Part shown: in pieces, positions 4,620 to 61,064 of the stretch
How the letters are laid out: each line of letters starts with the position of its first letter
How positions within the stretch are numbered: the first letter of the stretch is position 1
Origin: Bigelowiella natans CCMP2755
Taxonomy: Eukaryota; Protista; Cercozoa
Length of the DNA stretch: 64,000 nt
Assembly (NCBI GenBank): GCA_000320545.1
Contig: ADNK01001186.1
Coordinates: forward strand, 1-64,000
Direction of reading: 5' to 3'
Made by a program: the position numbers and the translations under genes
The notes under the pieces: model-generated
Database searches by the model: none
What the model was told of the DNA's origin: nothing
The model's input: the letters and a program-made list of their open reading frames with translations, nothing else

Positions 4620-5770
4620 AAGTCTAGAGAGAAGTTTTATTTGCCATCTACGTGCTTGCATGTTCACTACAATGAGCAAATTGTCCAGAAACGTGATGAT
4701 TTGCACACATCAATGTGCGCTCGAGCTCATCACCCAAATACTGAGGTTGTACGTCAAGATTCGCATTGTGATTCGCACAAGTTTTGTCGTTGCATGGCTG
4801 GGAACATGGCTACATGTAGATGACCCAACACAATGCAACAGATCGGAGATGTCCAGATACTAGCTTGCCGCCGCTCATGAGCCACACCCCACATTTCATT
4901 TCCCTGCTGTCCGCTGTCGAACAAAATCAGTTGCATCATCAATGTGTGATTTGATTGCCATGTCTTTCTTCTTGCGTTTTCATTTTGTGCAGTCTAGCAG
5001 TGCATCTCTTCTGCTAATTCATCTTTGTGTTCTTCGATCAGCATCTTCAACACACGTGATCCTGTGATCGCACCGTTTTGTTGTTTTTTGCTTGTCTATT
5101 ATTTGACGACTTGCACCCAGTGCCAGCTTGGCTAGCTAGCATGACCAGCTAGCTAGCTAGCTGCAGCTAGCAGTGTCAGCACGCCGCCGCGAGCTCAAAT
5201 GATGTGCCTGCTGCTGTCACTGCGGTGTGCTGAGCATGAACATGCACCTGCTGCATCTGTCCAACAGTGCAACTTGTGGCACTCGGTGCACTTTTGTGAG
5301 TTGCAACCTTGGTGGGAACGGCCAACAAACCTTTCTAGCTTTCCAGCTAGCCAGTTTCGGTGAATGCATGTGCATCACAGGATGTCGAATTTGAAGATGC
5401 TTTGGAGGATCAATGCTGGAATGGGCGAAACCTGGGTGCGAAATGTGCGAACACACCATTGCTGGGCTGGGTCTTTGAGGCATCGGAAAAATGCGAATTG
5501 CTGCGGCCATTCTGGCTAGCTAGCTAGCCGGGGGGCTTGAGCAATGAACGATGAACAATGAACAATGAGCAATGAGACTGGACAATGAACAAGCAATGAA
5601 CAATGATGAAAACCCACACTTCCAAAGTGTGGCAAGACACTTGCATTGCACGAAATGCAGTGCCTCGAACTAGCCTCAGTGAGGACCAACTGGCAAACTA
5701 GCAGGGTTCATGCAAGTTGGCATGACTAGGGAGCATCATTCGCAGATGGCTAGATGGTGGCAACCACTCG
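4620..5770. other. TpA-depleted, CTAG-rich intergenic island 1
   Basis: Between 4861 and 5770 almost every TA lies in CTAG (exceptions CTAA ~5014, CTAT/TTAT ~5097-5101). GCTAGCTAGC arrays at 5131-5171 and 5516-5528. Confidence 0.9.
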
Positions 5771-6025
5771 AATTAGCCTGTAAATCCTTCCTACGACAAC
5801 CACAAATTCGTGTCTAGATTTAGATTTATAGATTCCATTTCGAAACTTCGTGAGCTGGCAAATGCGAAACCATCCGGGATTCGAGTCGAATCCCAGCCTG
5901 AGAATCTCCAATTGTCTCAGATGCAAAATCCTGTCCATTTATTGAAGTCGACTGAGGAAAACCTGTGTCGCAGCTTATTTGCGCTCCTCCGCGGAATTGG
6001 TTCCATACGCCTTTCTCCCTCCGCG

Positions 6026-6750
6026 ATGAGAGCTACTCGCATGATGTCCTGTCCGTCGGCCAGGAGGTGGGCTCTTAAGCTTCAGAAGTACCCGACGGTA
6101 ATTACTAGAGCGCGGCCTAATTTCAATGATGAACTGTAGCAAATATGCGCTTAAATGTCTTCTATGCCGCTCATCTAGCAGCGTTTTGGAGGTCCCGGCA
6201 CCGCAGCTGTTCCTTCTTGCTCCCCGCCACGATGTTGGTTTGGGGTGATTCGTGACGGATGGGAGGAACACATGCCTGAGTATTCGATAACGCGCAAACA
6301 GAGAAAGGTGCGTTCCTTTTTTTTTTAGATAAGCCATATAAATACGACATGCAAATCATGTTCTCTGTGGTGACTCCTCTTTGATCAAAATCGTCACCTT
6401 GTCTATTAATAACAACCCCGTCCCCCCGCCCCCAATTAGATTCGTGAACGAACCGAGGAACAGAACCGCATGAGGACCCGCTCGGCGAAAAAGTGATTCC
6501 CATAATCCTTGGATCTACCAGCTGTTCTTGAGATAGGATTTCGCTTTTTATTCCCCCCCCCCGTATCAGAGAGCAACATGCTCTTTCCTTTCTCGCATAT
6601 AACGCGTTTTATATACCCAATTTTAGTATAAACAAGGCCTTGAAGGCCACCGACGAATTTGTAGGAATGGAGGTAGTTGCCTTGTACATCGATAGGGATG
6701 TAGCGAGCGCTCTTTCACGGATCAACAATAATCGTACGCACACGCGCGCG

Positions 6751-6797
<47 letters not shown>

Positions 6798-6798
6798 C

Positions 6799-6846
<48 letters not shown>

Positions 6847-8649: not shown

Positions 8650-9176
8650 CACTTACTCGCACTGACACATATTTAGTTCAATCTTCACGAGCTGAAAGAT
8701 CCTGACTATGTGGGGGTAAGTACTAGTGGTAGTAGGAGCAGCAGCAGTAGCAGTAGTTGTAGAAAGCTATGCTTGATGAGCACAACGCCGCTCTCGCATT
8801 ATCATTACGCACTCAGGAAGCGTAAGTACGTTTGCTGTCTGTACGTTGTTATCGTCATCGTCTCCTAACAGCCAGGCCCTCGTACTGGTTGGTCTATTTG
8901 TTGTTGTTGTTGTTGTTGTTAGGGCAAGCGCCTACACCATCAGATAAAGACGAGCGGCCCCGGTGATGACTGCGATTACAGGATGATGATGACGATGATG
9001 TTTTTGATGATGATAATGATGGTGATGGTGATGATGATGATGATGATGATGATTGCAGCAAGGATATAGAATATACTTTGCCTTCGGCTGATATAATACA
9101 GCAGTTTTGATGCATACCATCCAGCAAATTTATCACAAGAGAAAAATGCGGAGGATTTGCTTCTTCTGCGCGCGCG

Positions 9177-9219
<43 letters not shown>

Positions 9220-9425
9220 GCACACACGCGCGCACTTGAGAACGCTGTTTTAATTCTTCTAACCATTGATCTTGCTACTACTACTACTACTACCACTACT
9301 ACTACTACTGGTACCCAATATCAGGGGCTGGTGTGTTTGACGTGTGCGAAGATGATAAATGCGTCGTTAAAGCGGTAGGAGGCATAGCAGCAGAATATGA
9401 CACAAATATATAAATATGATACACT

Positions 9426-9481
<56 letters not shown>

Positions 9482-9756
9482 AATGGGTGTATTTAAATAA
9501 GTGTAGATAAATTGTCCTCTAATACATGCTGCTACTCGCAGCTCGACGACGACGATGATGATGACGATGATGATGAGAGAGCCTTGATTTTTGAATTAGG
9601 TTATGCTTCCACACGCTCCAAACATGAAATCCATCGCCTACGTGGTCCAGGTGAAGGATCGGTCCTTTTTAAGGACAAGAACATGGCATAGCATTGCAGA
9701 TAGACTAGAGGGAGGACGACTGCGAAAGAGAGTGGAACTAGATTCCAACAATATTC

Positions 9757-9808
<52 letters not shown>

Positions 9809-9813
9809 TTTAC

Positions 9814-9847
<34 letters not shown>

Positions 9848-10079
9848 ATAAATATATATTATATTAAAAATCTGTGTAGTCTGTCTGTCTCTGTGTGTGT
9901 GTGTGTGTGTGTAAAAGTTATATATGTGTTTGTGTGGTGATATGCCCAGGAAAAGAGCATCGTTGGACGCGTAGATGTGAAGGCATTGTCAGCTCGCGGG
10001 GTTCTGCCGGTATAAAATTACTACGATGGTGTGCAATGTTTATGCCCCCAAATTTTACGTGTATAAAGATGTATTATAT

Positions 10080-10348: not shown

Positions 10349-11868
10349 GACTACACAAAAACACAATGCGTAACTATATTTTTCATGCGTGTTCTCTGCG
10401 TACATCGATTAGATAAACGGAGCGGACTTCTTAGGACCTCGAAAGCCAGGGCGAAAAATCGGTGAGGAGAAGAAGAAAAACACGACAAACAGAAGAAGAA
10501 GAAGAAGAAGAAGATAGGAAGAAGAAAGAACATAGGAGTAGCTTTACTGTGGTCTTCCTGCAATTCCCCGATATACATTATGTACGTGGGTGTTTGTGGG
10601 ATATGAGTTTCTACCAAGCTGCTGCTATGTTTTACACGTTTGGTCGAATTTTTTGTGTTCTCTAGGGGACATAAAAAGAGAACCCCCCCCCCCCCCCCTC
10701 CCCTTTGCCCCCGCTTCTCTCCCTTTTTGTTGAGAGCATTTGTGCTTTCAGTGGGCACCAACGCATGCCAACATAACACGGGAATAATCAGCTTGATTAG
10801 ATTTTCCGACATGACGTGTGTGTGGGGGGGGGGGGGGGGGGTGCGCGTTTGATGTGGTGATAACGTACCTATGCCCTTCTGCTCCCCCGCCACAGCAATC
10901 GTGATGGACAACAAGAACTCGGAAGGCGTCGTTGATTTAGCTTACGGAGCGGATGTCATGGTTAGAAATCGCCTCGTCGTAGCAGTAGAAAGCCTCTGAG
11001 AGTGGCTTGACATCGCTCGAATAGCGTCCATATTTCTGCTGCGACACTACTATTCTCCATGGGTTGAACGTCACGCTTTCCCTCCGCCCTCGATCATTGT
11101 TAGATTCATGAGTCCAGCTTCGAGGCGGGGCTCCGTAAGGTGGCGGAGAAGAAGGGCCATTGCACGTCGAAGATGGCAGGGGAGACGGCGAGAGAAGCGG
11201 GTAGTTGAGGGCTAACCGAAGTACAATGCCGTCAAAGCAGCATTTATGGGGCGGAGAGAAGATGGGAGTTATTCTGCCCCCACCCCCCCCCCTCCCCCCC
11301 TCCTTTATGTTCCGTGAGTTCTGGAAATCGCGTGGATTCTCCTTGCGTGCTGATGCGGAGGGGGAGACAAGGATGATACTGATAATGATGATGATGATGG
11401 TGGTGGTGGTGGTGCTTTCGCAGGAGTCAAGCAGCTTGTGTTGACGCATTTCAGTAATCGCTACGCCTTACTCAACTCGGTCGTTGTCAGTCTAAATTAT
11501 TGACCAGTTTTCTCGTGATTCATCTCATGCGAACGATTGGGAAAATCAATCCAACACCTCCGCGCGTTAAAGCACTGGCTCGCATTGTCGGCTGGGGGGA
11601 GATTAACGTACAATGCCATCTTTTGCCATTAGGTGCCTGGCCTCCCAGGTGTTGATCTTCTCGTTGATGAAGCAATGGAAGCTTTCAGATCTGATAATGT
11701 ACGTCTCGATGTGTATTCACTCATGCGCCCTCTATGTGTGTGTGTTGTGTGTGTGTGTGTGTGTGTGTGATTATTTCTCAGCCGTGCGTTTTATTTTTTA
11801 TAACTTTACAGGTTGTGGCTGCGATAGACTTTATGTCGATTCCTATTACCAGAGCCTCCTCGGATTAG
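6026..11868 (+). CDS. RNZ: Ribonuclease Z (short-form tRNase Z, ELAC1/Rnz-like) with N-terminal extension; multi-exon, start codon uncertain
   Basis: Spliced exons give [55 protein letters not shown] (HxHxDH), DIYGPQGL, exosite GPIYKRIKNGEKITLPNG, GADVM-IHESSF..KKGHCTSKMAG, LVLTHFSNRY, and VVAAIDFMSIPITRASSD* (TAG 11866-11868). Confidence 0.92.
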
Positions 11869-12006
11869 TATCTTCGTCGTAGTGATGGCTGCAGTGCTTT
11901 CGTGTGTATGGGCGCATGTCAATAATATATTGGAAGATTAGTATCTTCGTCGTAGTGATGGCTGCAGTGCTTTCGTGTGTATGGGCGCATGTCAATAATA
12001 TATTGG
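11863..12006 (+). repeat. 71-bp perfect tandem duplication starting at the RNase Z stop codon
   Basis: 11863-11933 is identical to 11936-12006 (gattagtatcttcgtcgtag...aataatatattgg), with a 2-nt spacer. Confidence 0.95.
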
Positions 12007-12019
12007 TATAGCAAGATAT

Positions 12020-12270
12020 TTCTGACGCATGCAAGCACATTACCACCTAGGCTGAGCTAGCTGAGGCCATCATGTGCGCCTGGCTACGCTTGCATGCATA
12101 TCTAGATGTGCACAAGTGTGTGTGTGCGTGTGCGCATGCTAGCATGTGCGTGTCTCTGCCAAATGCTCTGCAGCAGCAAATGCTTTGACATGGCTACGAT
12201 CACACTAGCTAGCTAGCACATACAGCATCGAAGTTCGAGCTGCTAGTCGAAGAAGGCGGGGTGCTTGCTA
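12020..12270. other. TpA-depleted island 2 (short), between the convergent RNZ and ABCC 3' ends
   Basis: Residual TA mostly in CTAG/CTA; gcatgctagcatg and ctagctagctagc motifs. Confidence 0.75.
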
Positions 12271-32157: not shown

Positions 32158-33294
32158 TCGCCGTGCATATAGGGCGTGTTGTCAATACCTGTTGAGTGCA
32201 CCCCGGCAAAGCTGCTTCATGTCCTCCAGTCGAGAGGGGAACAAGCACAGTACATCCACGCAGCTTATCTAAAGGTCTAGATCAACTTCATAACGGTGGT
32301 GGTGTGATGGTGGCATGGTGGAAGGAGAACACACGGTGAAGTCGCAACAAGGACTACTTCTCTCATGAAATACCTGACGTCGTCAGCGTTTACAAATAGC
32401 ACTAGCCGCCAAAAGCTGGAGTGGCTGCTTCTCAACACATGAGCAACAACAACAACAACAACAACAACAACAAGTAAAACATTACTTCCCCTCTCCATCT
32501 TAGGAGCAGAAAGACAGCGATGAGCTGCTTCTCGACACGAAGAGGAGCCTTAAGCTACAGGGCCTACGGAAGAGGTAATGCTATCAGCATGGTGGTTGTT
32601 GACTAGTGACACTAGGCGGGTGGGGGGGGCAGGCAGGGAGCGATATGGTAAAAGTAGTTGTGCTATCATGTTGTGTTATACATCACAATGTCCCCTCTAC
32701 ACCCATCGCACTACTTATTGCGGTGCCAAATCATCGTGAGGTTGTTTGTCTGAGAGACGCCATCGATGATAGCCTTTTCCTCTCTAACGCTATTTTCATG
32801 CGAGGTCATTGGATAGAAGGCCATCGACCCTCGAAATTTAGAGAAACATTAGCCGTGAAAATTCGTGTAATTGATTCTGCTCCCCCCCCCCCCCCCCGGT
32901 GCTTGTGGTTCGAAGCTCTAGGGCGAGTGATGTACAGATGAAGGACTGCTGCCGTCGTCTCTTGTGCATCCCTATGAAAGACAGGTCGGGTAGTAGTAGA
33001 CTTAGCAGAAACATGTAGTAGTAATAGCAGCAGTATGATGGTGGTAGTGTAGTAGTGAGGTAGATCATTCAAAGGAGGTGAGTTTCCCCGTTCTCAACGG
33101 CCAAGTGTCAGACATGACGACGTTGGCGTTTTTCTTCGTGTATTCTGTGCTATATGTTGAGAGGGACATAGGATTGCTGTGAATTCACTCCATTTAGGTA
33201 CGTTTTCGAGGGCCTCACCTTGATTATTTGCAACAACTACGATGTGAAGGGGAATGGGGATGTTAGAATAAAATGGAACTGGCAGCAGAAATAA
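29002..33294 (+). CDS. TCAIM: TCAIM-like protein (DUF4460/DUF4461) with a probable mitochondrial presequence; multi-exon
   Basis: LKSTLRKFYMRV-HPDLF..ARKKNTE N-terminal motif; LAGRVFVFSSS..DGLGRIILPV..DWL; C-terminal YDVKGNGDVRIKWNW* typical of the family; Arg-rich leader MRVFIKNSLRRG. Confidence 0.85.
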
Positions 33295-33339
33295 TTCACT
33301 TTTGAATAAAGTAAGGAGTGATACGCTATGCACGTTTGT

Positions 33340-34270
33340 TCTACAGCCCACACATAGGACATGCTATATTGCAATGTGTCTGCTTAGTTAATGATCAGAG
33401 GCCTGAAAAATAACCACCTGACCAATGTTATTATGCATGGATGAATATATGAGCTTGCATTCAGCTACTGTGCTGCTACATTGCGGTATACAGTGCAGCG
33501 CCGCCTGATCACGAGATGCTAGAGATGGCAAAAAATTGCTACGCTAGCTACGTTCATTTTTGACGTTTTCACGACGCGTGATGCATGCAACGCATAATGT
33601 AGAGTCGTGTGTATGTCGCGGTACGCATGCTAGCATGCTATTGCATGATGACACGCGATACGCACGAGCAGCAGGCAAGCGTAGCCGGCTTGCCACACTA
33701 GCACAGCTAGCTAGATAACGACAGCTAGACAGCTCTAAGTAGTTGCTAGCGCAAGCACACCGCTGCCTGTGCGGCTCTAGAGCTAACTAGCTAAACTAGT
33801 GGACACTAGGACAGCTTGCTACTCGTCAGGATGAAAGCACTCTTGCACTTTAGCACTAGCTAGGCAGCGTAGTAGCGTAGCTAGCTAGCATTGCAGGTGA
33901 AAATGTCGATGCCAACAATGTGGTTGGAACAAAAAATGATGACACATTGCAAGTTTCCAACGTGATCGATTGCAGATGCATGCTAGCATGGTGTATGCAT
34001 TTGAAAGCGTGACTTTCAAAAACGTTGTTGCAATGGCGGTACGTTGCAACAAAATTTGCCAGCATAGCATCATAGCGCACATGTTTGTGCACAGTCCATC
34101 TTTTCTGCTAGCTAGCTAGCATGTGCACAACTACATATGACCATGCTAGCTAGCTAGCACAGACAGCCATAGCTAGCATTGCTAGATTGTGCATGATCTA
34201 CAGTGAGTGATGCATTGCAGCCGGCGCTACGCCATGCATCGAACCGCACAGAGATGCAACGTCTCGGTTC
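33340..34270. other. TpA-depleted, CTAG-rich island 4, between the convergent TCAIM and phosphatase 3' ends
   Basis: Dense gctagctagc, gcatgc and tgca; most remaining TA is in CTAG/CTA/TAG. Confidence 0.88.
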
Positions 34271-34467
34271 GCATGTATGTGTTTGCAACGTTCTTCTTCC
34301 TTGATCAGCGTCTCATCAATGTGCAGATTGAACTTGAACATGAGCAAAATGCAGCGAGGAGTTATCGGAAGCCTCGTCGAAAAAGAAAACCCACCTATTT
34401 CCATCAGAAGCCGCATCACGTACGTCACTTCAGCGGCAGTAGATGATGGCGAAGGTGCAGGCGATCC

Positions 34468-35173
34468 TTATTCCTTATTGATGGTGTACGTATAGGTTTT
34501 GCTCCCATCTTCGTTCACAAAAGTCGTTTTCAGGGAGGTCTTGTTCCCTTTATGAGCCATGAAACCGTACTTTCCTTCCATATATCCCTTCAATCCCTTG
34601 TATCCTTTGTTGACACCGTTGTGTTCGCGAGCCCCTGTGTGAATACAGACAGACGACACAACGGAAGATCAGATTGTTAGCGCCCCCTCACCCCCCAGTA
34701 TTTTTTTCCCACTTAGAAGTAAACATGACTGAAATCGACGTGCATGCGCATTACAATCACATGTTTGCCAGAATAAACGTCTATAAACAAATCAGCTCAC
34801 CAGCTCCACTTCCAAAGTAAGAAACGCCATTCTTCACGATGTGTTGCAGGATATGGTCGTGGCCGTTGAAATACTAAGATTATGGTGAGTATTACGGATA
34901 ATAGTGGATGATGGATTCATAAGATGTTGCTGTCCACTCTGCTCTGCGTTGTGAGACGGAGCTTCTCTTTCAACGCAGCTTACAAGAATTTAACATAAGC
35001 AAAAGAGTCTGCAGATCTTGGTGTGTAAGTGTGTGTGTGTACAGAATGGGTTTCGTAGTACCATATCGACATTGTATTTCTCAAGCAAGGGCTCAAGGGA
35101 CTTGACCAAAGAGGGCGTGTCACCTGGTGATGATGATATCGACAGCCATTATTAAACGTACTCCAAATAGCTT

Positions 35174-38568: not shown

Positions 38569-40191
38569 ATGTATTCCTCCATCGAGACCTCTGCAATCCC
38601 TCGTGCCCCTGCACGGAAGTCGCGCATGCTTATGGTGGGCGTTGTTCTCGTCGGCATTGTATGCTTAGTTAGTTTCGCTGCAAACCCTCTTGGAACGGCA
38701 ATCGTACCATCATCGGCTTCCAGGAGCATGTATCGCGCTGGCCCTTCGACTTCCTCCATTCCAAGGGGGGCTAGTGGAATTAGCTCCAGCTCAATGGGTG
38801 CCATGGGAGCTATAAATAACCACAACTTGAAGAAAATGCCAAAGGGAACCAAGTTTCACTGCAACTGGGTTGCTGGTGAGCGCAATTTGAAGGGACATGC
38901 TAAAGCTGATGGATCTAAGTATCGCGTTGCTGTGATTGGTGGTGGCCCCTCCGGTTCAGCTGCAGCAGAAATCTTCGCAAAGGAAAAGGGAATTGATACC
39001 TTCATTTTTGAGCGTAAGATGGACAATGTGAAGCCTTGTGGTGGCGCTATTCCGCTTTGCATGGTTGACGAATTCGACCTTCCAGAGAGCGTCATCGACC
39101 GTAAGGTGCGCAAGATGAAGATGATATCCCCTTCCAACCGTGTGGTTGACGTCGGGCGCACTCTTAAGCCTAATGAGTACATCGGTATGTGTCGGCGTGA
39201 GGTACTAGATGGGTTCATGCGCAACCGTTCCGTCGACCTTGGCGCTGTCCCCATCAACGGCCTCGTGACCAAGATTGACGTACCAAGAGGTGACTCTGAT
39301 CCCTACGTGATTCACTACCAAGATTACGGTGATAAGACCGCAGGTGGTGCTGGAACTCCAAAAACTATGGAATTCGACGTACTAGTTGGTGCTGATGGTG
39401 CTAACTCCCGAGTCGCGAAAGCTATTGATGCTGGGGAGTATAACTATGCTATTGCATTCCAGGAGCGAATTGCGATTGATGAAGAGAAGATGGAATACTA
39501 CAAGGACCTAGCTGAGATGTATGTGGGTGATGATGTCTCTCCTGACTTTTACGCTTGGGTATTCCCTAAATACGATCACGTTGGTGTTGGTACTGGAACT
39601 GTCGTGAACAGACCCGACATTCCAAAATACCAGAAGGCTATTCGCGAGCGTGCAAAGGATAGGCTTGAGGGTGGAAAGATCATTAAGGTGGAGGCACATC
39701 CTATCCCTGAACATCCTCGTCCTCGCCGCGTCCAAGGCCGTGCTGCCCTCGTAGGTGATGCTGCCGGATACGTGACTAAATGCTCTGGCGAGGGTATCTA
39801 CTTCGCAGCAAAGAGTGGACGCATGGCTGCCCAGGCCATTGTGCAACTCATGCAGGGTGGCACTCGTCTTCCAACTCAGCAGGAGATCGAGGATACATAT
39901 ATTGCAGACTATGACAAAAAGTACCAAGCCACCTATGTTGTACTCGACCTCCTCCAGAAGGTATTCTACAGCTCGAATGCTGCCCGCGAGGCATTCGTTG
40001 AGATGTGTGATTCTGACTACGTGCAGAAGGTCACCTTCGATTCCTACTTATACAAGACTGTGCAGGGAGGCAATCCTGTTGATGACATTAAGCTGCTCTT
40101 CAGCACCGTCGGATCCATCTTCCGTGCACAGGCTACCACACCAAAGGACCGTGAGTTCTCAAACCCTGTGGAGTCTTTGAAGAGATTGTAA
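38569..40191 (+). CDS. chlP: Geranylgeranyl diphosphate reductase with a bipartite plastid-targeting leader, intronless
   Basis: RVAVIGGGPSG, ERKMDNVKPCGGAIPLCMV, SPDFYAWVFPKYDHV, LVGDAAGYVTKCSGEGIYFAAKSGR; about 100-aa leader with hydrophobic MLMVGVVLVGIVCLVSFA followed by a Ser/Arg-rich segment. Confidence 0.97.
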   Translation: MYSSIETSAIPRAPARKSRMLMVGVVLVGIVCLVSFAANPLGTAIVPSSASRSMYRAGPSTSSIPRGASGISSSSMGAMGAINNHNLKKMPKGTKFHCNWVAGERNLKGHAKADGSKYRVAVIGGGPSGSAAAEIFAKEKGIDTFIFERKMDNVKPCGGAIPLCMVDEFDLPESVIDRKVRKMKMISPSNRVVDVGRTLKPNEYIGMCRREVLDGFMRNRSVDLGAVPINGLVTKIDVPRGDSDPYVIHYQDYGDKTAGGAGTPKTMEFDVLVGADGANSRVAKAIDAGEYNYAIAFQERIAIDEEKMEYYKDLAEMYVGDDVSPDFYAWVFPKYDHVGVGTGTVVNRPDIPKYQKAIRERAKDRLEGGKIIKVEAHPIPEHPRPRRVQGRAALVGDAAGYVTKCSGEGIYFAAKSGRMAAQAIVQLMQGGTRLPTQQEIEDTYIADYDKKYQATYVVLDLLQKVFYSSNAAREAFVEMCDSDYVQKVTFDSYLYKTVQGGNPVDDIKLLFSTVGSIFRAQATTPKDREFSNPVESLKRL

Positions 40192-40529: not shown

Positions 40530-42786
40530 CGAGCATGTGGACATGAGCTATACAAGCAATAACCACCCCTAGACCACACCGAAAGCCGAACACGCACACA
40601 CAGTGCAAGCGATGTGCGTGAATGCCGCTAACGTCACTTATCGACAGACTAGAGACGAGATCATGCATGCACACTGTGATGAATCATGCATCTCTAGATC
40701 TAGCATTGCACATGATCGAGAGTGTCATGTGTCTAGTTGTAGTTGCCAAGATCAGCATGTAACATGGATGATGACACAAACTTTTTGTGCATCTGTTTCG
40801 TCAGGGCTAGAGGGCCTCATCCGTGATGGACACAGCTAGACAGTGCCACAATGACACAATGCACACCAGACACGTCCAGACATCGTGTTCACAGAATCGC
40901 GTTGTCTGCAATCGACATCGTGTTGTGGTGTTGAAAGAGTGTGCAGAAAGAAACTGTGATGATCTGCTGATCGACAACGTTTCCAAAGTGTTGCACGACA
41001 CTTGCAAGTTGTGAAACGCAGGGCCCAGCTGAGCCAGCTGCTGAAAACAGCGAGGACTGACTGGTGAAACCAGCATGATTGAAAAATGGTGTGTTGGCAG
41101 GCCACCAGGACACAAGCAAACAGCACGACGTGCCAGCTGACGTGTGGCGTGCAGCGTGGGCTGCTGCTGTCGTTGTGCGAACAACGTGCTTGCAATTGAG
41201 AACCCACGTTTCCAGGTTTGCACACGTCGTTGATGTGAACGAAAACGAATGGATTGATTTTGACACAGACATGACTTGAGACAATCTTGCAAGTGCATCT
41301 AAGTCAGGGGAAGCCCACAACAGACACAGCAATGGCATGCATGATGCACGGGGAAAAATCCAAAAAAAGTCAGGAATTGGCTTCCAGCAGAACACCATGC
41401 TGTGCATTGTGATTGGAGTTGTGTTGCTTGCATGCGCATGCTTGCTGCATGTTGACATGTGGCTAGACAATGAATTTGAACTCACATCGCAGGCCCGCAA
41501 CACTCGCTGCTGCGCTAGCTAGCCAGGCTGCTGCGTCATCGCAACATTGAGATGATGACATGATGACGCACTGAAAAATGAAGTCGAGACAGCGCCCCCT
41601 GTCTCGACTTTCTGCATCACCTAGTCACAGAATGCTCGTTGTTCGAACTGATGCCAGTTTCGAGTGCCATTCACATGCTGGCATGGCTCCCTGTGCGATG
41701 TGCGTGCAGACTTGGACGCGTGCTTTTGCATGCAGCCAAGCGCACACGTGGATTCATCAACAATTTTTCATCGCGACGTCCATCTCGACTTTCATGCATT
41801 TCCCGCTCCACTGCTGCATGCTGATCTTGGCATCTTGGCGAGCAGCCGACCCCTTCTGGCCTTTCATTTTTTCCCGCCAAACTGCATGCTGATCTTGGCA
41901 AGTGGCCTGCAAGTCTGGAAGTGAGAGAAAAAGTGCACGTGTCAATGTGTGCACGTGTCTCCAATCTGGTGTGACGTGTGATCGCAGTCCCAGCAGTGAG
42001 GAAAGGTGGTCAGAAAGAACCACGCAACCCCACTCAAGCACTGCTCATGCTGGAGCGGACACACGCGTGATCTGTCAGGGTCTAGGTAACTCAAGATTCG
42101 TGCACGTTGGTTCGCTAGTTCGGCATGCCAACGCAAGACATGCGCTCTGCAGTGCTGGTGCTGCAGCACGAGCACTGGCAACACGCATTGCAAGCTGAAC
42201 CAGCTGGCCAGTGAAAGCGCATCATGCGCAGCACCGGCAAAACTGAATGCACTTCAAGCAGGCTAGCAGGACTGGAGTCAACAGAGCTAGAGAGGCGGGG
42301 CACGTCTAGCTGACATCGCATCGCACCGAAAGAATTGTGTGATGTTGCCGCGTGTCCACAATTGCGCACCCACAGCCGTGTGCGTCCACTTTTGCCAAGA
42401 AATTCCTGAACGAAAGCTCTGTCAAAACGGCTGTCTGCGACCAGGTCACCAGAAGGTTCACCGTGAACAAGAGCTCTGGTTTTGAAGGAGGTGGAACTAT
42501 CCGTGAAGGAGGTTGCACAGGCTGTGTGCGAACCATGCACCAATGACGTGAGCAAGGCAGGCACAACCTCATCCAAGAGAGAGTTGTTGAACTTTGCATT
42601 TGAAATGGGAAAACAACATTGCCAAATGACGGTCAGTGACAGCAATCCCGGTGTCACATCGGGACAAAACATCGGAGAAGAAGCGAGGAGATCCGGTGCC
42701 GCATCACAATTCGCGAAGCTTCGGTTGTCGAAAGAGGCGTTGCACAACCCTAACATTTTCTTGGAAATCACCCAAAATGTTTCCAA
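40530..42786. other. Largest TpA-depleted island (5), between the chlP 3' end and the EFL promoter
   Basis: By eye, 15 TpA in 40801-42786 (11 in CTAG) and none in 40839-41299; abrupt return of TA at 42787. Confidence 0.95.
41581..41624 (+). mobile_element. Possible Helitron 3' terminus
   Basis: Perfect 12-bp hairpin aagtcgagacag-cgcccc-ctgtctcgactt, then a 10-nt spacer, CTAG and a following T. Confidence 0.35.
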
Positions 42787-43320
42787 TTAATTCAATGCCG
42801 ATAATTTATTGTCCATTAAATGATAATGAATCTCTTTTTTGTACATCTACTCATGTAACCGATCAATTAATTTTTTATTTAAAAAAATATTTGTAAAGAA
42901 CGATATTATGGAATGAAGAAAGTGAGTTTTGGCCCCAGATATGCGCTTTAACCTTTATGATGTGAAAAATTATAAAATTTAGGCATCATATCCACTTGTA
43001 CCAACCCAAATGTGACAAATATAAATCTTACATATAATTTATCGGCCGCGATATTAACTCTCGGATAAAAAGTATATTAGAATATCACCGTGGCTTCGCA
43101 TCCATTCGTAGCTGCGCGATAATACTTATCAAAAACCAACTCGAGTAGAACCCCACCCCTTGTTACACACCACCTATTCACATACGTCTCTCTTTACTTA
43201 GTGATGTGACAACTTCACAACTTCATCGCAAATATATAATGGTTGTTTTTCTTTTGAAAACTGTTTCATTTAACGATTTGTTTGAAGCTTCTTTAGATTC
43301 GTTACATCTTGAGCTGCGTT

Positions 43321-43353
43321 GTAAATGATCCATTTTCTTTTTGTTTATGTTAG
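43321..43353 (+). other. Probable 33-nt 5'-UTR intron of EFL
   Basis: gtaaat...pyrimidine tract...gttag, ending 9 nt before the ATG; an in-frame stop upstream supports ATG 43363 as the start. Confidence 0.4.
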
Positions 43354-43362
43354 ATCTGAACT

Positions 43363-44904
43363 ATGGAGAACCGTTTGGCAGCAGACCCAAAGAACCTTCG
43401 AAAGGATGTCGCTGATAAGCCTCACCTTGGCGTTGTCATCGTCGGTCACGTCGATGCTGGAAAATCCACCACCACCGGACACCTCCTTTTCGAGCTCGGT
43501 ACTATGGACGAACGTGCAAAAGCCGATTTGATTGCGAAGGCAAAGGAAATGAAGAAAGAATCCTTCGCCTTCGCTTTTTTCATGGACAAGCAGAAGGAGG
43601 AGCGCGAGCGTGGTGTCACAATCTCTTGTACCACCAAGGAATTCCACACTACCAACTTCCATTACACCGTCATTGACGCTCCTGGACACAAGGACTTCAT
43701 TAAGAACATGATTTCCGGTGCCTCCCAGGCTGATGTAGCCCTTCTTATGGTTCCTGCAAAGAAGGGAGGTTTCGAGGCTGCTATCCAGAAGGGAGAAGGT
43801 GGTGATGCAGCAAATAAGGGTCAAACCCGCCACCACGCTGAGCTTACTAAGCTTCTTGGAATTCAGCAAATCATCGTGGGAGTCAACAAGATGGACGAAA
43901 AATCTGTGAAGTACGACCAAGCACGTTACAAGGAAATCAAGAAGAACATGCTTAGCATGCTTAAGCAGTCTGGTTGGAAAATCAACGGAAAGCTTACAAA
44001 GGAACTTAAGGAAGCTGGTAAGAAGAAGGGACCTAATCTCATTCCCGTCATCCCTATTTCCGGTTGGTGTGGAGACAACCTTATCGTTCCTTCCACCAAG
44101 ATGCCATGGTTCAACAAGAAAGGATGGACCGCAACCACTCCATCCGGCGTCAAGACCAAGGGAGAGACTCTTTTCCAGGCTCTAGATCAGTTCGTTGAGC
44201 CTGTTACACGTGACCTCGAAAAGCCTCTTCGTTGCCCACTTTCAGGAGTTATTAAGATGTCCGCTGGTACCGTCATTACTGGCCGTATCGAACAGGGAAA
44301 ACTTGAGAAGGAAATTAAGACCAAAACTGGTGTCACTGGTACCCCAGTCAAGTTCTTTCCTTCTGGTTTGAAGGCAAAGGTGTTCTCGATCGAAGCACAC
44401 CACAGATCCCAAGCTAAGGCTGTTGCCGGTGATAACGTCGGTATCTGCATTAAGGGTCTACCAAAGGGTGTTTTCCCTAAACCTGGTGAGGTTATGACGC
44501 TCCTTGAGGACGACTCTGGTCTTGGTAAGACCGAGTGGTTCACTGTTGACGTGAAGGTTCAGGGGCATCCTGGAAAGCTCAAGGTAGGATACACTCCTCT
44601 TGTCCTCGTCCGAACTGCCAAGTGTCCTTGCAAAGTTACCAAGATCAACTGGAAAGTCACAAAGGCTAACCAGAAGCTAATGAAGTCCAAGAAGGAACTT
44701 GATAAGTACAAGGAAGAAGAAGCCAAGTTCATTCAGAAGGGAGATCTTGCTTCGATTACATTTGAGCCTCAAATGCCTTTTGTCGTGTCAAAGCTTTCCG
44801 ATTGCGAGGGACTTGGACGCGTCGCTGTCCTTGAATCTAACTCTCTAGTTATGATCGGTAAGATTACGGACTGCAAGAACAACCCAGTTAAGACAGTTTC
44901 TTAA
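43363..44904 (+). CDS. EFL: Elongation factor-like GTPase (EFL, EF-1alpha paralogue); coding region intronless
   Basis: GHVDAGKSTTTGHLLFELG, KESFAFAFFMDKQKEERERGVTI, DAPGHKDFIKNMISGASQAD, VNKMD. The AFAFFMD..KEFHT pattern and the insertion in FEAAIQKGEGGDAANKGQTR fit EFL rather than canonical EF-1alpha. Confidence 0.93.
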   Translation: MENRLAADPKNLRKDVADKPHLGVVIVGHVDAGKSTTTGHLLFELGTMDERAKADLIAKAKEMKKESFAFAFFMDKQKEERERGVTISCTTKEFHTTNFHYTVIDAPGHKDFIKNMISGASQADVALLMVPAKKGGFEAAIQKGEGGDAANKGQTRHHAELTKLLGIQQIIVGVNKMDEKSVKYDQARYKEIKKNMLSMLKQSGWKINGKLTKELKEAGKKKGPNLIPVIPISGWCGDNLIVPSTKMPWFNKKGWTATTPSGVKTKGETLFQALDQFVEPVTRDLEKPLRCPLSGVIKMSAGTVITGRIEQGKLEKEIKTKTGVTGTPVKFFPSGLKAKVFSIEAHHRSQAKAVAGDNVGICIKGLPKGVFPKPGEVMTLLEDDSGLGKTEWFTVDVKVQGHPGKLKVGYTPLVLVRTAKCPCKVTKINWKVTKANQKLMKSKKELDKYKEEEAKFIQKGDLASITFEPQMPFVVSKLSDCEGLGRVAVLESNSLVMIGKITDCKNNPVKTVS

Positions 44905-45099
44905 TTATGATGATAGCTAGTGACATTGGAATTGTCTTATGCACCATGTTATTACCTCTTAAAATTGCAATTTGATTCTATCAAAAATGAGAATAAGATT
45001 ATGTCGGACGCCTGCAACCATGTTACGCCAGTCGAACCCTCGCGCAATTTGGACGCTCCTTCAGCGAACCCGTCGCTTTTTGGTCATGAGCGGGGCGCG

Positions 45100-46560
45100 G
45101 TGCAGAATGTAAAATGCGGTCATGCACAAAGGTCCTGCATTCGATCATCATGCATGGATTGCAGGCTTGCGCACGCATAGCATGCATGCACACATGTTGC
45201 ATTTCGTTTGTTTGCAGGCACGTGCAGCCATCTAATGCAAGCCATCACAATTCACATTGGGCAAACGCGCACATTTTCACAAAATCACATCTTGCCTACT
45301 AACTAGCCAAACCGTGTAACATTGGGCTGTGTGACGAGCGGGGCCATGATGACATGTGCGCACATGTGGCCAGGAGCAACGCGCATGTGCACGGAATCGA
45401 TGTGATGCAAGTTTTGTGTTCAATCTCGTTCTAGTTTTCGAGAAATTCCAGCTTCATTGCCCAAAATTCAGCCATCTAAGCTGCGTGCCATGCAAGCAGG
45501 AGTTGCAGGAAACTGTTCCTCTGAGCTGTTGATCAAGACCCAGCTAGCCAGCCTGACATGCAGCACAAGGTGTTGGGCCCAAATCCAAAATCTCGAGGAG
45601 ACACCTCAGTTTTTGTGTTTTGAAAAGTGGGCAAAATTGGGGAATCAGAGTTTTCACTTTTTCAAGAAAAAGCAAAAGCCAACTCTCCCATTGGCACGAA
45701 TGCTCAGAAGCGCGCACGCACAGCCAAAAACGATGAAAAGCTGCTGAAAGCACTGGCTAGCTGGTCAAACGAGTCCAGCAGGAGTGTCAATGTGTCGACA
45801 TTTTGTGTGTTCCCACGTGCCGCACACCGAGAATTTTCACAAATGATCAAATTCAATTGAGCCAAATTGAAGTGCGCAATGACAGCTGCACGTTGAGCAA
45901 AAAATTGTCGAAAAACATCATCTAGTTTTTGAGACAGCTCACTTTTTGTGTCGATGTTGCACATTTGGGCAAGATGTGATGCATCGTACGTGCTAGCGTG
46001 AGTTTTCTCGCGGTAACCACAACGCACTAAAAGCGCATTGCGCTTTTGTGCAGCTCTAGAGCTAGTGTGCCTACAATGATGCATGCTAGCATGCAACAAG
46101 GTCATCGATCGCTAGCTGCTAGCTAGCTAGCTAGCGCAGATGCGATCGATCACACCATAGATGCATGCGCACGTGTCGTACGTACGTAGTAGTAGTCATC
46201 GTGCGCTGCTAGCTAGCTAGTGTGTACACAAGTTCAATGGATCGCTAGCTAGGTCGATGTCGATCGAGTAGTGATGCACGTGTGGTGCGTGCGCACGTGC
46301 ACGCGCAAGCAGGGCATTGAATTAGCAAATGTGCACAATCATCATGCACATTATTGCTAGCATAGTCACAAATGTATAGGTACACCACATCTTGGAATAA
46401 CTTTGTTCTAGACTCATATGATGTTGCTTCGCGGCAAATAAGAGTTACGTACTAGTCAAGTAGTAGTGTGACCTATGCAAAGGAGATGATGGTATCATTC
46501 CATTTAGACCAAACGCATGCCATTCGCTGATAAGCTATATGCAATGTCTAGATGTAGCTA
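45100..46560. other. TpA-depleted island 6, between the convergent EFL and ASPH-like 3' ends
   Basis: 45481-45985 is AT-rich but has only 3 TpA, all in CTAG; (GCTA)n arrays at about 46110-46255. Confidence 0.93.
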
Positions 46561-51545: not shown

Positions 51546-51615
<70 letters not shown>

Positions 51616-57970: not shown

Positions 57971-58172
57971 CAGCTCGGTTCGTGGTGTATGACATTATGG
58001 AATACATATCCACAACGACGCCTTCTTCCCTGCCCGTTTCTTGAATATTGATATCTTAGATGCTCGATACTAGTTCTGTTCATACGTAATAATACCCTCT
58101 TCCTCGTTGATTCGTTGGGCGAGTCGCTTCTACTCGACAGCTAAATGAGGGGTGCCCTGTGTGTGTGTGTGT

Positions 58173-58221
<49 letters not shown>

Positions 58222-58559
58222 CGTTTGCGTGCCATTGTGCCTAGAGCAGCTGGTAGCAAATACAACTCGATATTAGCATTTTCACACTCGACTCATAAGA
58301 AGTTGAATCATTTTACGACACCGGACAAATAAAAAGTTCGTACTTCAATTTTGCGAGCGTTGTAGGAGCGCGGGGTTTCCACTATTTTTAAGAAATTTGT
58401 TTGGCACTTCCCCGCAATTATCATATCATTTTTCACCAAAAACGCATACGAGCCACCGGCATTCACGTTTCTTCCAGCCGCCTACCACTGGGTATTATGG
58501 CTCACATTGAGTTAGTGAGACTTATTCGTGACTTTTGTAAGCTGTAGCTATGAAGACAC

Positions 58560-59420
58560 TTTGAGGACTCGCTACGCCAGAATGGCATTGAATGTACATT
58601 AGATCGATTCCGTCATCGTCATGCGTCATCATCATCATCATCACTAGATCAATGCATCATACAATTTAGAGACGATGGATACCTTTCATATGTGTGCGCG
58701 TCTAGACAGATCTAGAGATCCCGGCACGGCTGCGCATGACAGCGGGTTGTATTACGTAGTGGCGGTCGTAGTGCTAAAGTGGGCTGCCACATACCATGCT
58801 AGCATGCAGCATTATCAGCGCTAGAGCGCCCTAGCTAGCTAGCCTGGTAGCTACGACGCGATGTGTGAGACGGATGTAATGAAATGTTCAAACGAACGAC
58901 GCGATGTGTGTACGCTGCGAAACGAGCCATACCCAGCACATAGCATAGCTAGCTAGCTCGGAAAACGTTATGTCATTATGCCACTGCATCGCTAGATCGC
59001 GCATGTGCAGTATTATTAGAGTAAGTCGCCCATCGCATTGCGCTAGTGCTAGATTATTACTGATGACATATAAACTGCAGCATGTAGCATCGCATCGATA
59101 CGATTTACACACGCGCACGTATGTGCATGTACATGCATGCGCGGTAAAATAGCATTTCCAGACTTAGTCAGCCATACTAGCTAGCTAGTATAATAAGTAA
59201 TGAAGATGCATAGCGATGAAATGAGCATTGAAAAATATAAAAAGGTATCATCTCTCGATCGTATCGCGCTGGTTGCTTCATCTGGCAGCTATGCTAGCGT
59301 CATTATTTTCTGGTCTAGTGCTAAAGTGGTGATAAATTGTTCACCCTCGCTAGCTCATGAACAATTGCGCATGATTCCTTTAGTGCACCGTATCGCTTTA
59401 CCTTGCACTTAATAAGCTCT
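58560..59420. other. TpA-depleted/CTAG-rich island 7 (partial conversion), between the convergent MYB and 6-Cys gene 3' ends
   Basis: gctagctagc arrays and a mixed (YR)19 tract at 59106-59143. Confidence 0.8.
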
Positions 59421-59463
59421 GCAAGAGTTGATACTCCGTCTCTGCTAGGTCACAATGTTTATT

Positions 59464-61064
59464 CTACTTTGACAGTAGTTTGCCGTACGCATCGTAAGCT
59501 GCTTTGAGTGGTGAACCCTCTGCAACAATAGAAAATCCAGGAAATCACTTTAAAAAAGATCCAAAGCAAATCTCCCGCACCTCAGCACCCCGCACACACA
59601 ACACGAAAGCACAAAAGCAGACGTAGCAGAGTTAAAATTCTATGCGCTGGTGGATGCGCATAGCTACTTACTTTGTTTCTCTAATCTTGAGAAGCCGTTG
59701 TCAGCGGGCATTATGTCATCTGCTACGACTTCCTGTATTGTATTGCAGCACAGATAGAAGTGATGGGAATCGTCGTAATACTGTGGAGCTACCATCCGTC
59801 AAATTTTGAAGACTACAATTATTATTTTCTATAGCATATTACATGCAAACATTATGAATATCTTGCACTTGGCGCTCGCTCGTGGGGGCAGTTAGCGTAA
59901 CAATGTACATGAAACGGTAGGCGTTGTTGCATGCAGCTGTGCCATGGCATTTTGTTTTTCGCTTTTGAGCGAATACACTGCATCTTGCTATGCGATTACC
60001 TGCTCCGTTGGTGGTTCCCCAGCGCAAAATTCTGCACACTAATATTCAACCCAAAAACGACCAAACAGAATCAATGGTCCTGGTTGTACGTTACATTAAA
60101 TTGATTGGCACATCGGCCGCTTTGCACCTTCTTTCTTCTTTTTTTCCCCTCTTTCCCTCCATCTCCCCCCCCCCCCTCTCTTTTAGAATTACAGTGGGAA
60201 GTAACCTGCGTTTTGCAATAATCCCCACTTTTTGGCGCAATCGCGGTGCACTCCTTCAATTTTCACACAATTAACACCGTTGCAAAGAATTTGATCGTAA
60301 ATATGGAGTCATGAATAATTATCAACAGCAAGCAGACGATGGTGAGATTGACAATACTTCTGGCATATGTATTAAACATATTCATGAAGGGGTTGTTGTG
60401 ACTTTATTTGTCTGGGTTATGCACGTGATTTTATTGCGACAGACGCTGTCACTATCAAGGTTCATCGATGGAAAAACGGGTTAAGTAGGATTTTTCCACC
60501 TTGATGCATTGCTTCAAACAGTCGGGTATATCCGTCCTGTCTGCCCGGGCCTTCGTTACCGAACTCACGGCTATGAACAAGTAAGGAACATTTCCGCCCC
60601 CATAATTATAAACATGGGTGACAAAGTAGTAGGAAACTGACGGACATAATGCTTATGGTGTGTGCAAGCATCACCTTGAGCCACAACAGTAGCGATCGCT
60701 GCGTTCATTAGGGAACGCTGTTAAGGGGGAGGGGGGGGTGGGAAGTTGTCAATCTTGGAAGGGAGCAGAGGCAGCACAACGACGGTCGTACCCGTGACAC
60801 TGACGATGACGATCGAGTACGATGATAGTCCATAGGCTTCTCTATATTGGCGAAAACGTGCACCTCTTTGTCACTTATGGTGCTGCGACGACCACTGCCA
60901 TACGATGTGCGGCGAGTTCCTCCAAGGCCCCAAGCCCTGGGTTTCATCGCAGCAAATACAGGAGAGACTCCCGAACGTCGGGCTACATTCATGGCAGCTC
61001 CACTGCATTGACAGGACCAGTTCAAGAGCGTGATCGCAACGAAAGCGTACTGGGCCAAGCGCAT
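59464..61064 (-). CDS. Small plastid-targeted, probably thylakoid-lumenal protein with a CX3CX3CX10CX3CX3C motif; multi-exon, function unknown
   Basis: Phase-compatible GT-AG exons give a signal peptide (MRLAQYAFVAITLLNWSC), an Arg/Ser transit region, hydrophobic SYSIVIVSVTAIATVVAQAVSS, then KARA|DRTDIPDCLKQCIKECTAIAPKSGDYCKTQCAEFCAGEPPTEQEVVADDIMPAEQRLLKIRET..GSPLKAAYDAYGKLLSK*. Confidence 0.7.

Follow-up and report, generated by a model that had tools for sequence, protein, structure and literature searches.

A TpA-poor, CTAG-retaining intergenic island in Bigelowiella natans

How can 2 kb of a genome lose nearly every TpA step and still keep those that lie in the tetranucleotide CTAG? The question is raised by a 64-kb contig stretch of the chlorarachniophyte alga Bigelowiella natans (the window, within which all islands, blocks and background values given below were measured). 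In this window, positions 40801-42786 (1,986 nt) contain only 15 TpA, where 113.5 are expected from base composition (observed/expected (O/E) 0.13). Eleven of the 15 are in CTAG, the others being CTAA (2), CTAT (1) and GTAA (1), and between 40838 and 41300 there is none. An earlier prediction made from the letters of the DNA (the original prediction) had given the same number, the same contexts and a TpA-empty stretch at 40839-41299, and our recount was identical. We interpret the island around these positions as ordinary non-coding nuclear DNA that was driven nearly to completion by a locally targeted hypermutation of TpA, a reading to which we assign a probability of about 0.8.

TpA hypermutation as such is not new here. 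It was described in 2026 in a bioRxiv preprint by Mettrop et al. (doi 10.64898/2026.01.13.699255; version of April 2026), who showed that the process exists in B. natans and in which direction it runs. The original prediction had stated that no characterized mechanism for such a loss was known; this has been overtaken for the process, which the preprint describes, but not for its enzyme. The present analysis provides the composition of the island, the accounting for its GC excess, the hierarchy of contexts in which TpA survives and the fit of a mutation model.

Loss of TpA in the island

At 40801-42786 both TpG (211; O/E 1.82) and CpA (210; O/E 1.60) are increased, and equally so. The total of pyrimidine-purine steps is nearly constant, as would be expected if transitions were the sole changes; in the island TA, TG and CA together make up 0.220-0.224 of all steps, versus 0.200 in the background. 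When the TpA deficit is subtracted from the GC content of the island (51.4-52.0%), 46.7-46.9% is obtained, the GC content of the background being 46.8%. The GC excess of the island is the TpA deficit, a point added by the present analysis, and the composition corrected in this way is that of the host background. The other steps (O/E of CpG 0.76, ApT 0.89, ApA 1.12 and TpT 1.10) bear out the earlier statement that neither CpG decay nor a general GC enrichment is involved. Decay of CpG via 5-methylcytosine is excluded as the cause, since CpG (O/E 0.76 versus 0.87 in the window) has lost only about 32 steps, whereas TpG and CpA together have gained about 174. Polymerase eta, which the original prediction had already dismissed, is excluded because AA is not eroded.

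The depletion is real throughout the 1,986 nt first indicated, but its left edge lies about 240 nt further out: the depleted state begins at about 40563, and the TpA surviving in 40563-40800 are already mostly in CTAG. In the main island so defined, the frequency of TpA is 0.011 (background 0.058), that of TG 0.106 and that of CA 0.107, with a GC content of 51.4%. Its right boundary is sharp, TpA O/E changing from 0.15 at 42251-42750 to 0.88 at 42751-43250. A sliding scan of TpA O/E was made over the 64-kb window and combined with a listing of the gaps between non-CTAG TpA. It revealed islands at about 40563-42786, at 5016-5773 and at 45318-45986. Gaps without non-CTAG TpA measure 787, 674, 540 and 510 nt in the islands and at most 197 nt in the background; with 0.055 non-CTAG TpA per nt in the background, the 787-nt gap has a P of about 2e-19. 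The presence of 11 of the 15 survivors in CTAG has a P of about 1e-11, CTAG accounting for 5.3% of the background TpA.

De novo mutations and the slow decay of CTAG

During mutation accumulation in B. natans, hypermutation of TpA to TpG and CpA was observed directly (Mettrop et al., 2026). An integrated giant-virus region and a virophage region together received 231 of the 302 nuclear point mutations, at a rate in both regions of about 4-6e-7 per site per generation, a thousandfold that of the rest of the genome; 230 of the 231 were A to G or T to C, nearly all of them at TpA (Mettrop et al., 2026). By our own tally of Table S2 of the preprint, 226 of these regional mutations are at TpA. The authors drew a parallel between the process and repeat-induced point mutation (RIP) of fungi, proposed a role in defence, and named as candidate DNA adenine deaminase the ADAT2-like protein Bn78255, which has residues linked to DNA editing (Mettrop et al., 2026).

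Mettrop et al. also mapped TpA-poor, CpA+TpG-rich windows over the whole B. natans genome. They used 1-kb windows with Rho_TpA ≤0.43 together with Rho_CpA+TpG ≥1.52, and defined 124 clusters of at least three consecutive qualifying windows (Mettrop et al., 2026). For 1-kb windows inside the island, Rho_TpA is 0.09-0.29 and Rho_CpA+TpG 1.57-1.87 in four tilings, which is beyond both thresholds. Depending on the tiling the island amounts to one or two qualifying windows, short of the three of a cluster.

A strand-symmetric conversion of TpA to TpG and CpA, as originally claimed, agrees with the near identity of the TG and CA counts, with the GC accounting and with the de novo mutations in B. natans. 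CpG, originally thought to be a further product, has to be struck from the list, being less frequent than expected. A RIP-like local hypermutation of the island is supported.

Table S2 gives three bases around each mutation, and a T to C change in NTA can be read on the opposite strand. In this way the 3' neighbour of the mutated A was found to be A in 74, C in 57, G in 23 and T in 81 cases (n = 235, including nine TpA hits outside the two regions; the hand tally was confirmed by whole-word counts in the file). Against the shares of TAN in our window (G 22.9%) the deficit at 3' G has a binomial P of 1.4e-7. It corresponds to a relative rate of about 0.4, to be taken as an upper estimate given that half depletion has already occurred in the viral region. 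On scaffold 10 the A to G and T to C changes follow one another in 102 runs where 104 are expected (own tally), and by this count there are no strand-coordinated tracts among the scaffold 10 hits. The text of the preprint mentions neither CTAG nor flanking context, nor a 3'-G handicap, nor CCAG and CTGG as by-products.

Among the TpA surviving in the islands, 30 are in CTAG, 5 in CTAH or DTAG (about 69 expected) and 2 in DTAH (about 119 expected), H standing for any base except G and D for any base except C. CTAG outlasts all other TpA mainly because it is the sole tetranucleotide with the 3'-G handicap on both As. Its decay products CCAG and CTGG are 2.4-fold enriched in the islands, and the edges of (CTAG)n arrays inside the islands read CCAG, CTGG or CCGG. 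The original prediction had assumed that a 3' G blocks the reaction and that CTAG is spared. It was right in that a 3' G is disfavoured and in that CTAG outlives the other TpA. An absolute block is ruled out, however, by the 23 de novo hits with 3' G and by the eroded array edges: the effect is a slowing, to a relative rate of about 0.15-0.4. CTAG itself decays slowly, and many of the CTAGs are 8-bp scars (see below) and not plain ancestral TpA. We conclude that a 3' G cuts the rate at least 2-fold and that CTAG is slowed, not immune.

The mechanism that we propose would convert the A:T pair of TpA to G:C, a change of the top-strand A giving TpG and one of the bottom-strand A giving CpA. By the data, both strands are hit equally, one site at a time and only at TpA, in the order TAA, TAT and TAC >> TAG, and the action is local with a sharp right border. 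The reaction would be several-fold slower with G 3' of the A, and CTAG would decay slowly to CCAG or CTGG. The DNA affected would already have been very rich in CTAG, belonging to a palindrome-rich intergenic class with (CTAG)n arrays and XXXX-CTAG-XXXX insertions. As for the chemistry, an enzymatic deamination of adenine in DNA appears most plausible, with the ADAT2-like protein of the preprint as the candidate; targeting could be via silent chromatin or a guide RNA.

Since TpA is self-complementary, a modification directed at T would leave the same footprint. 5-Formyluracil promotes T to C changes, and the T of TpA could be converted to 5-hydroxymethyluracil or 5-formyluracil by a JBP/TET-like enzyme and mispair with G, without any adenine being deaminated. 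The symmetry of TG and CA, and the 3'-G effect, which is equivalent to a 5'-C effect on the opposite T, would fit this chemistry equally well, and the deaminase candidate of the preprint is a bioinformatic one. In favour of the deaminase are the residues linked to DNA editing in the ADAT2-like protein; for a T modification or its enzyme we have seen no evidence in this organism. We consider the T-directed chemistry unlikely and continue with deamination of adenine.

The sequence class affected

Conversion of TpA in the whole-window background gave a poor model of the islands (r = -0.33), their sequence being of a special class, and a model based on blocks was used instead. The window contains TpA-normal intergenic blocks that are rich in palindromes (GCATGC, GCTAGC and TGCA, plus (CTAG)n arrays), which served as proxy for the unmutated state (Table 1). 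The TpA O/E of this class is 1.07. The GC step has an O/E of 1.8 in the blocks, 1.39 in the islands and 1.03 in the rest of the window, GG/CC one of 0.5, 0.65 and 0.98, respectively, and the density of CTAG is 15.5, 9.6 and 2.1 per kb.

The blocks were mutated in silico with two parameters, the dose (2 per strand) and the relative rate at 3' G (0.15). This yielded 8.5 CTAG per kb (observed in the islands 9.6), 2.4 CTAH or DTAG, in which one strand is handicapped (1.9), 0.7 DTAH (1.1) and 11.0 CCAG or CTGG (12.6), and the tetranucleotide correlation of the blocks with the islands rose from 0.58 to 0.90. Because the block model reproduces the densities found in the islands, these appear to be copies of a native intergenic class that have been edited. 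Long alternating pyrimidine-purine runs are frequent in the window and not in the islands, which is uninformative on fossil (TA)n tracts. Outside the islands the window carries many long compound dinucleotide microsatellites, built as (CG)n(CA)n(TA)n or (TA)n(TG)n, at 192-247, 6733-6843, 9167-9477, 9761-9850, 51549-51611 and 58158-58223.

Could the islands have lacked TpA from the beginning, or could TpA have been removed by selection, for instance against UpA-sensitive RNA, TA-targeting transposons or TATA-like sites? The locus has no ancestor to compare with, and the island shares its GC steps and its low GG/CC with a distinct intergenic class. The same class, however, occurs in the window with normal or high TpA, the missing TpA have come back as TG and CA to the same extent and account for the GC excess, and in a chlorarachniophyte the mutation was observed as it occurred. 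Selection would also not spare CTAG and yet remove ATAG, GTAG and TTAG. An origin without mutation is therefore very improbable.

Many of the CTAGs are flanked on both sides by a perfect 4-bp direct repeat (XXXX-CTAG-XXXX); these we call scars. In the window 41 of the 221 CTAGs are scars, 32 of them outside CTAG arrays, at a chance rate of 2.7% (P 4e-15). The islands have 14 scars among 35 CTAGs (40%; P 1e-13 versus the chance rate), 7 of 16 in the main island. Scars are restricted to the palindrome-rich blocks and the TpA-erased islands, with CATG and CTAG itself as frequent targets. Their density, 3.8 per kb in islands, 4.9 in blocks and 0.1 elsewhere, indicates that islands and blocks are of the same class. 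The scars look like an 8-bp insertion or like the footprint of a transposon excision with a 4-bp target duplication. They are typical of the blocks and reflect a process separate from the loss of TpA; a description of them was not found in the literature. A search for an intact element (ends CT...AG, 4-bp duplication, inverted termini) gave 11 matches, no more than with other end dinucleotides, and the match that spans the third island has no real terminal repeat.

The scars suggest another reason for the persistence of CTAG, namely that it is continually inserted, by the scar process or by slippage of arrays, or that methylation or a bound protein shields it. In three island scars (CCAG-CTAG-CCAG or CTGG-CTAG-CTGG) it is as if CTAG had landed in an already mutated CTAG, the proportion of scars among the island CTAGs is far above chance, and CTAG is 2.8-fold enriched in the islands relative to the whole window. 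Yet the TpA-normal blocks are richer in both CTAG and scars than the islands, so a supply of CTAG after editing is not required, although it may contribute. The de novo data show the 3'-G handicap independently, and the erosion at the array edges testifies to loss of CTAG, with no absolute protection. As the explanation of CTAG persistence we regard resupply or shielding as rather unlikely; probably it is a contributor and not an alternative to the 3'-G handicap.

The sharp borders of the islands could also be taken as a sign of misassembly or of a contaminant joined into the scaffold. This can practically be dismissed: there are three islands in one contiguous, gene-bearing stretch, and they have CTAG scars and motifs in common with the neighbouring host DNA. 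Nor do we know of a genome with a TpA O/E of 0.1 in which CTAG is kept.

What kind of DNA was hit? A coding remnant in the islands was looked for and rejected. A search of Pfam with 20 open reading frame (ORF) pieces from the three islands gave no match above threshold. Below it were HATPase_c_2 at 42467-42787 (+; E 0.003, 18 bits) and HRDC at 45624-45857 (+; E 0.002, 18 bits), both at chance level over 20 queries. For the longest island ORF (223 amino acids, 42118-42786, minus strand) a search of 5.8 billion proteins gave no homologue, four island ORFs had no exact match, and the translations are rich in Cys and Ser and non-coding in look. ORFs of 163-223 amino acids in the main island are artefacts, because TpA-free DNA has neither Tyr codons nor TAA and TAG stops. 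The window has no notable direct or inverted repeats, and a BLAST search in a purine/pyrimidine alphabet of the islands against both window strands gave only matches of chance length and no duplicate of an island. The searches of the islands for Pfam domains, homologues and repeats revealed no remnant of a virus or transposon, although a fully degraded element would escape them. The foreign origin that goes with the footprint of Mettrop et al. is thus not found in the island; the target of the mutation looks like host intergenic DNA.

Several points weigh against the hypermutation reading. The direction in which this locus changed is deduced from its composition, not polarized against an ancestral or sister copy, and the TpA-normal neighbour blocks stand in for the ancestor by assumption. 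The preprint ties the process to viral and transposon DNA, nothing of which is detectable in the island. The islands yield a 3'-G rate of about 0.15, below the rough value of about 0.3-0.4 given by the de novo mutations, a comparison made without the true context availability of the viral region. Finally, the 3'-G class of Table S2 is lopsided, with 4 A to G changes at TAG and 19 T to C changes at CTA, although these are one event read on opposite strands; chance (binomial P about 0.01) or the way genes are oriented in the viral region may be responsible.

The genes on either side of the main island encode a geranylgeranyl reductase, 84% identical to the Chlorarachnion reptans protein, and an EF-1alpha-like GTPase (EFL). 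An EFL protein of identical sequence is present in MMETSP, EukProt, nr and UniRef, with Chlorarachnion, Amorphochlora and Lotharella as the nearest named relatives. Exact matches to the reductase are likewise present in MMETSP, EukProt and nr. The similarities of the two proteins identify the window as chlorarachniophyte nuclear DNA. The EFL unit (42787-45317), whose upstream region and 3' flank have normal TpA, sits between two TpA-erased islands; about 400 nt separate the EFL stop codon from the third island downstream, which adjoins the TpA-normal, CTAG-rich block 46001-46500. The unit resembles an active gene left out of an otherwise edited neighbourhood. ORFs are sparse in the window, and tRNA genes and Rfam families gave no match in it.

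Table 1. Positions of islands, blocks, scars and neighbouring genes in the 64-kb window
Feature	Position	Strand	Remarks
Main TpA-erased island	40563-42786		2.2 kb, non-coding; between the 3' end of the geranylgeranyl reductase gene and the EFL promoter
Sharp right boundary	42786/42787		TpA-free DNA against the TpA-normal, AT-rich EFL upstream region
Second island	5016-5773		674-nt gap without non-CTAG TpA; TG 0.116, CA 0.093; carries eroded (CTAG)n arrays
Third island	45318-45986		510-nt gap without non-CTAG TpA; TpA frequency 0.0075
(CTAG)2 array with third unit CCAG	41515-41526		Third unit a CTAG having taken T to C
Scar ATCT-CTAG-ATCT	40690-40701		Main island
Scar AGGG-CTAG-AGGG	40803-40814		Main island
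Scar ACAG-CTAG-ACAG	40832-40843		Main island
Scar TCAC-CTAG-TCAC	41617-41628		Main island
Scar TTCG-CTAG-TTCG	42111-42122		Main island
Scar CAGG-CTAG-CAGG	42259-42270		Main island
Scar AGAG-CTAG-AGAG	42283-42294		Main island
Scars in other islands	5331-5342, 5746-5757, 45540-45551, 45753-45764		
Further scars in the window	12135-12146, 33626-33637, 33721-33732, 33802-33813, 46082-46093, 58795-58806		
TpA-normal palindrome-rich intergenic block	33251-34500		Proxy for the unmutated state
Similar TpA-normal blocks	8751-9500, 11751-12250, 46001-46500, 58751-60000		
Geranylgeranyl reductase	38569-40191	+	Left neighbour; FAD_binding_3, GGR_cat; intronless; TpA content ordinary
EF-1alpha-like GTPase (EFL)	43363-44904	+	Right neighbour; intronless; one island on each side

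Comparison with known systems and meaning

The island resembles most closely the footprint described by Mettrop et al. in the same species: TpA is converted to TpG and CpA on both strands, Rho_TpA is low, Rho_CpA+TpG high and the GC content raised, and the action is local with sharp limits. The difference is in the target, which in the preprint is integrated DNA of nucleocytoplasmic large DNA viruses (NCLDV) and virophages (Mettrop et al., 2026), whereas the island is short and without viral or transposon remnant.

Fungal RIP is likewise a local, dinucleotide-specific and strand-symmetric introduction of transitions that can go near to saturation and wrecks the coding capacity. It runs, however, from C to T at CpA, creates TpA and lowers the GC content, whereas in the island CpA is in excess and the GC content is up by 5 points. 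RIP needs duplicated DNA and a DNA methyltransferase-like enzyme; a second copy of the island is not present in the 64-kb window.

With APOBEC3 acting on retroviral DNA and ADAR acting on double-stranded RNA, the process would share the disabling of unwanted nucleic acid by editing. APOBEC enzymes act on C, and the strand-coordinated runs typical of deaminases acting on single strands are missing in the de novo data (102 versus 104). ADAR also prefers a 5' U. It acts on RNA, edits after A as well and tends to favour a 3' G. The island, in contrast, has lost only TpA with AA untouched, and a 3' G is disfavoured both in the islands and in the de novo data, which rules out an ADAR-like preference as the cause.

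TadA, ADAT2/ADAT3 and the adenine base editors deaminate A after U or T (U33-A34 in the tRNA substrate), and variants of TadA act on DNA. The ADAT2 homologue Bn78255 of the alga is a candidate only, its activity on chromosomal DNA being predicted. Among the substrates of eukaryotic ADAT are several anticodons that have G at position 35, and the 3'-G handicap is for this reason not predicted by ADAT. In the very-short-patch repair of enterobacteria, too, a context-specific process at T:G or A:T sets the numbers of CTAG versus CCAG and CTGG. Very-short-patch repair removes CTAG, which is scarce in enterobacteria, whereas in the island CTAG remains, and organisms and enzymes are unrelated.

As a tentative extension, which could well turn out to be wrong, editing of TpA may reach beyond viral and transposon DNA and silence or mark native palindrome-rich blocks, some copies being fully edited and others untouched, with the TAH preference leaving CTAG as a long-lived relic. 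Editing may even be linked mechanistically with the insertion of CTAG and a 4-bp duplication in these blocks, for example if the editor is recruited or excluded by a CTAG-related nuclease or transposase.

To the discovery of the process, which is that of the 2026 preprint, the present analysis adds the 3'-G handicap with its consequence for CTAG, CCAG and CTGG, a host-like target and the link to the blocks with CTAG scars. The site rule TAH >> TAG, under which CTAG lingers while CCAG and CTGG build up, has to be reproduced in vitro by any candidate enzyme. The evidence that the process also affects short intergenic DNA of non-viral, host-like appearance bears on how the targets are chosen. There is also a practical warning: long ORFs and gene models called inside TpA-free islands are artefacts. 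An editor that converts A:T to G:C in DNA and is directed at selected parts of a eukaryotic genome would represent a novel form of genome defence that mirrors fungal RIP; a natural DNA adenine editor could be obtained from it.

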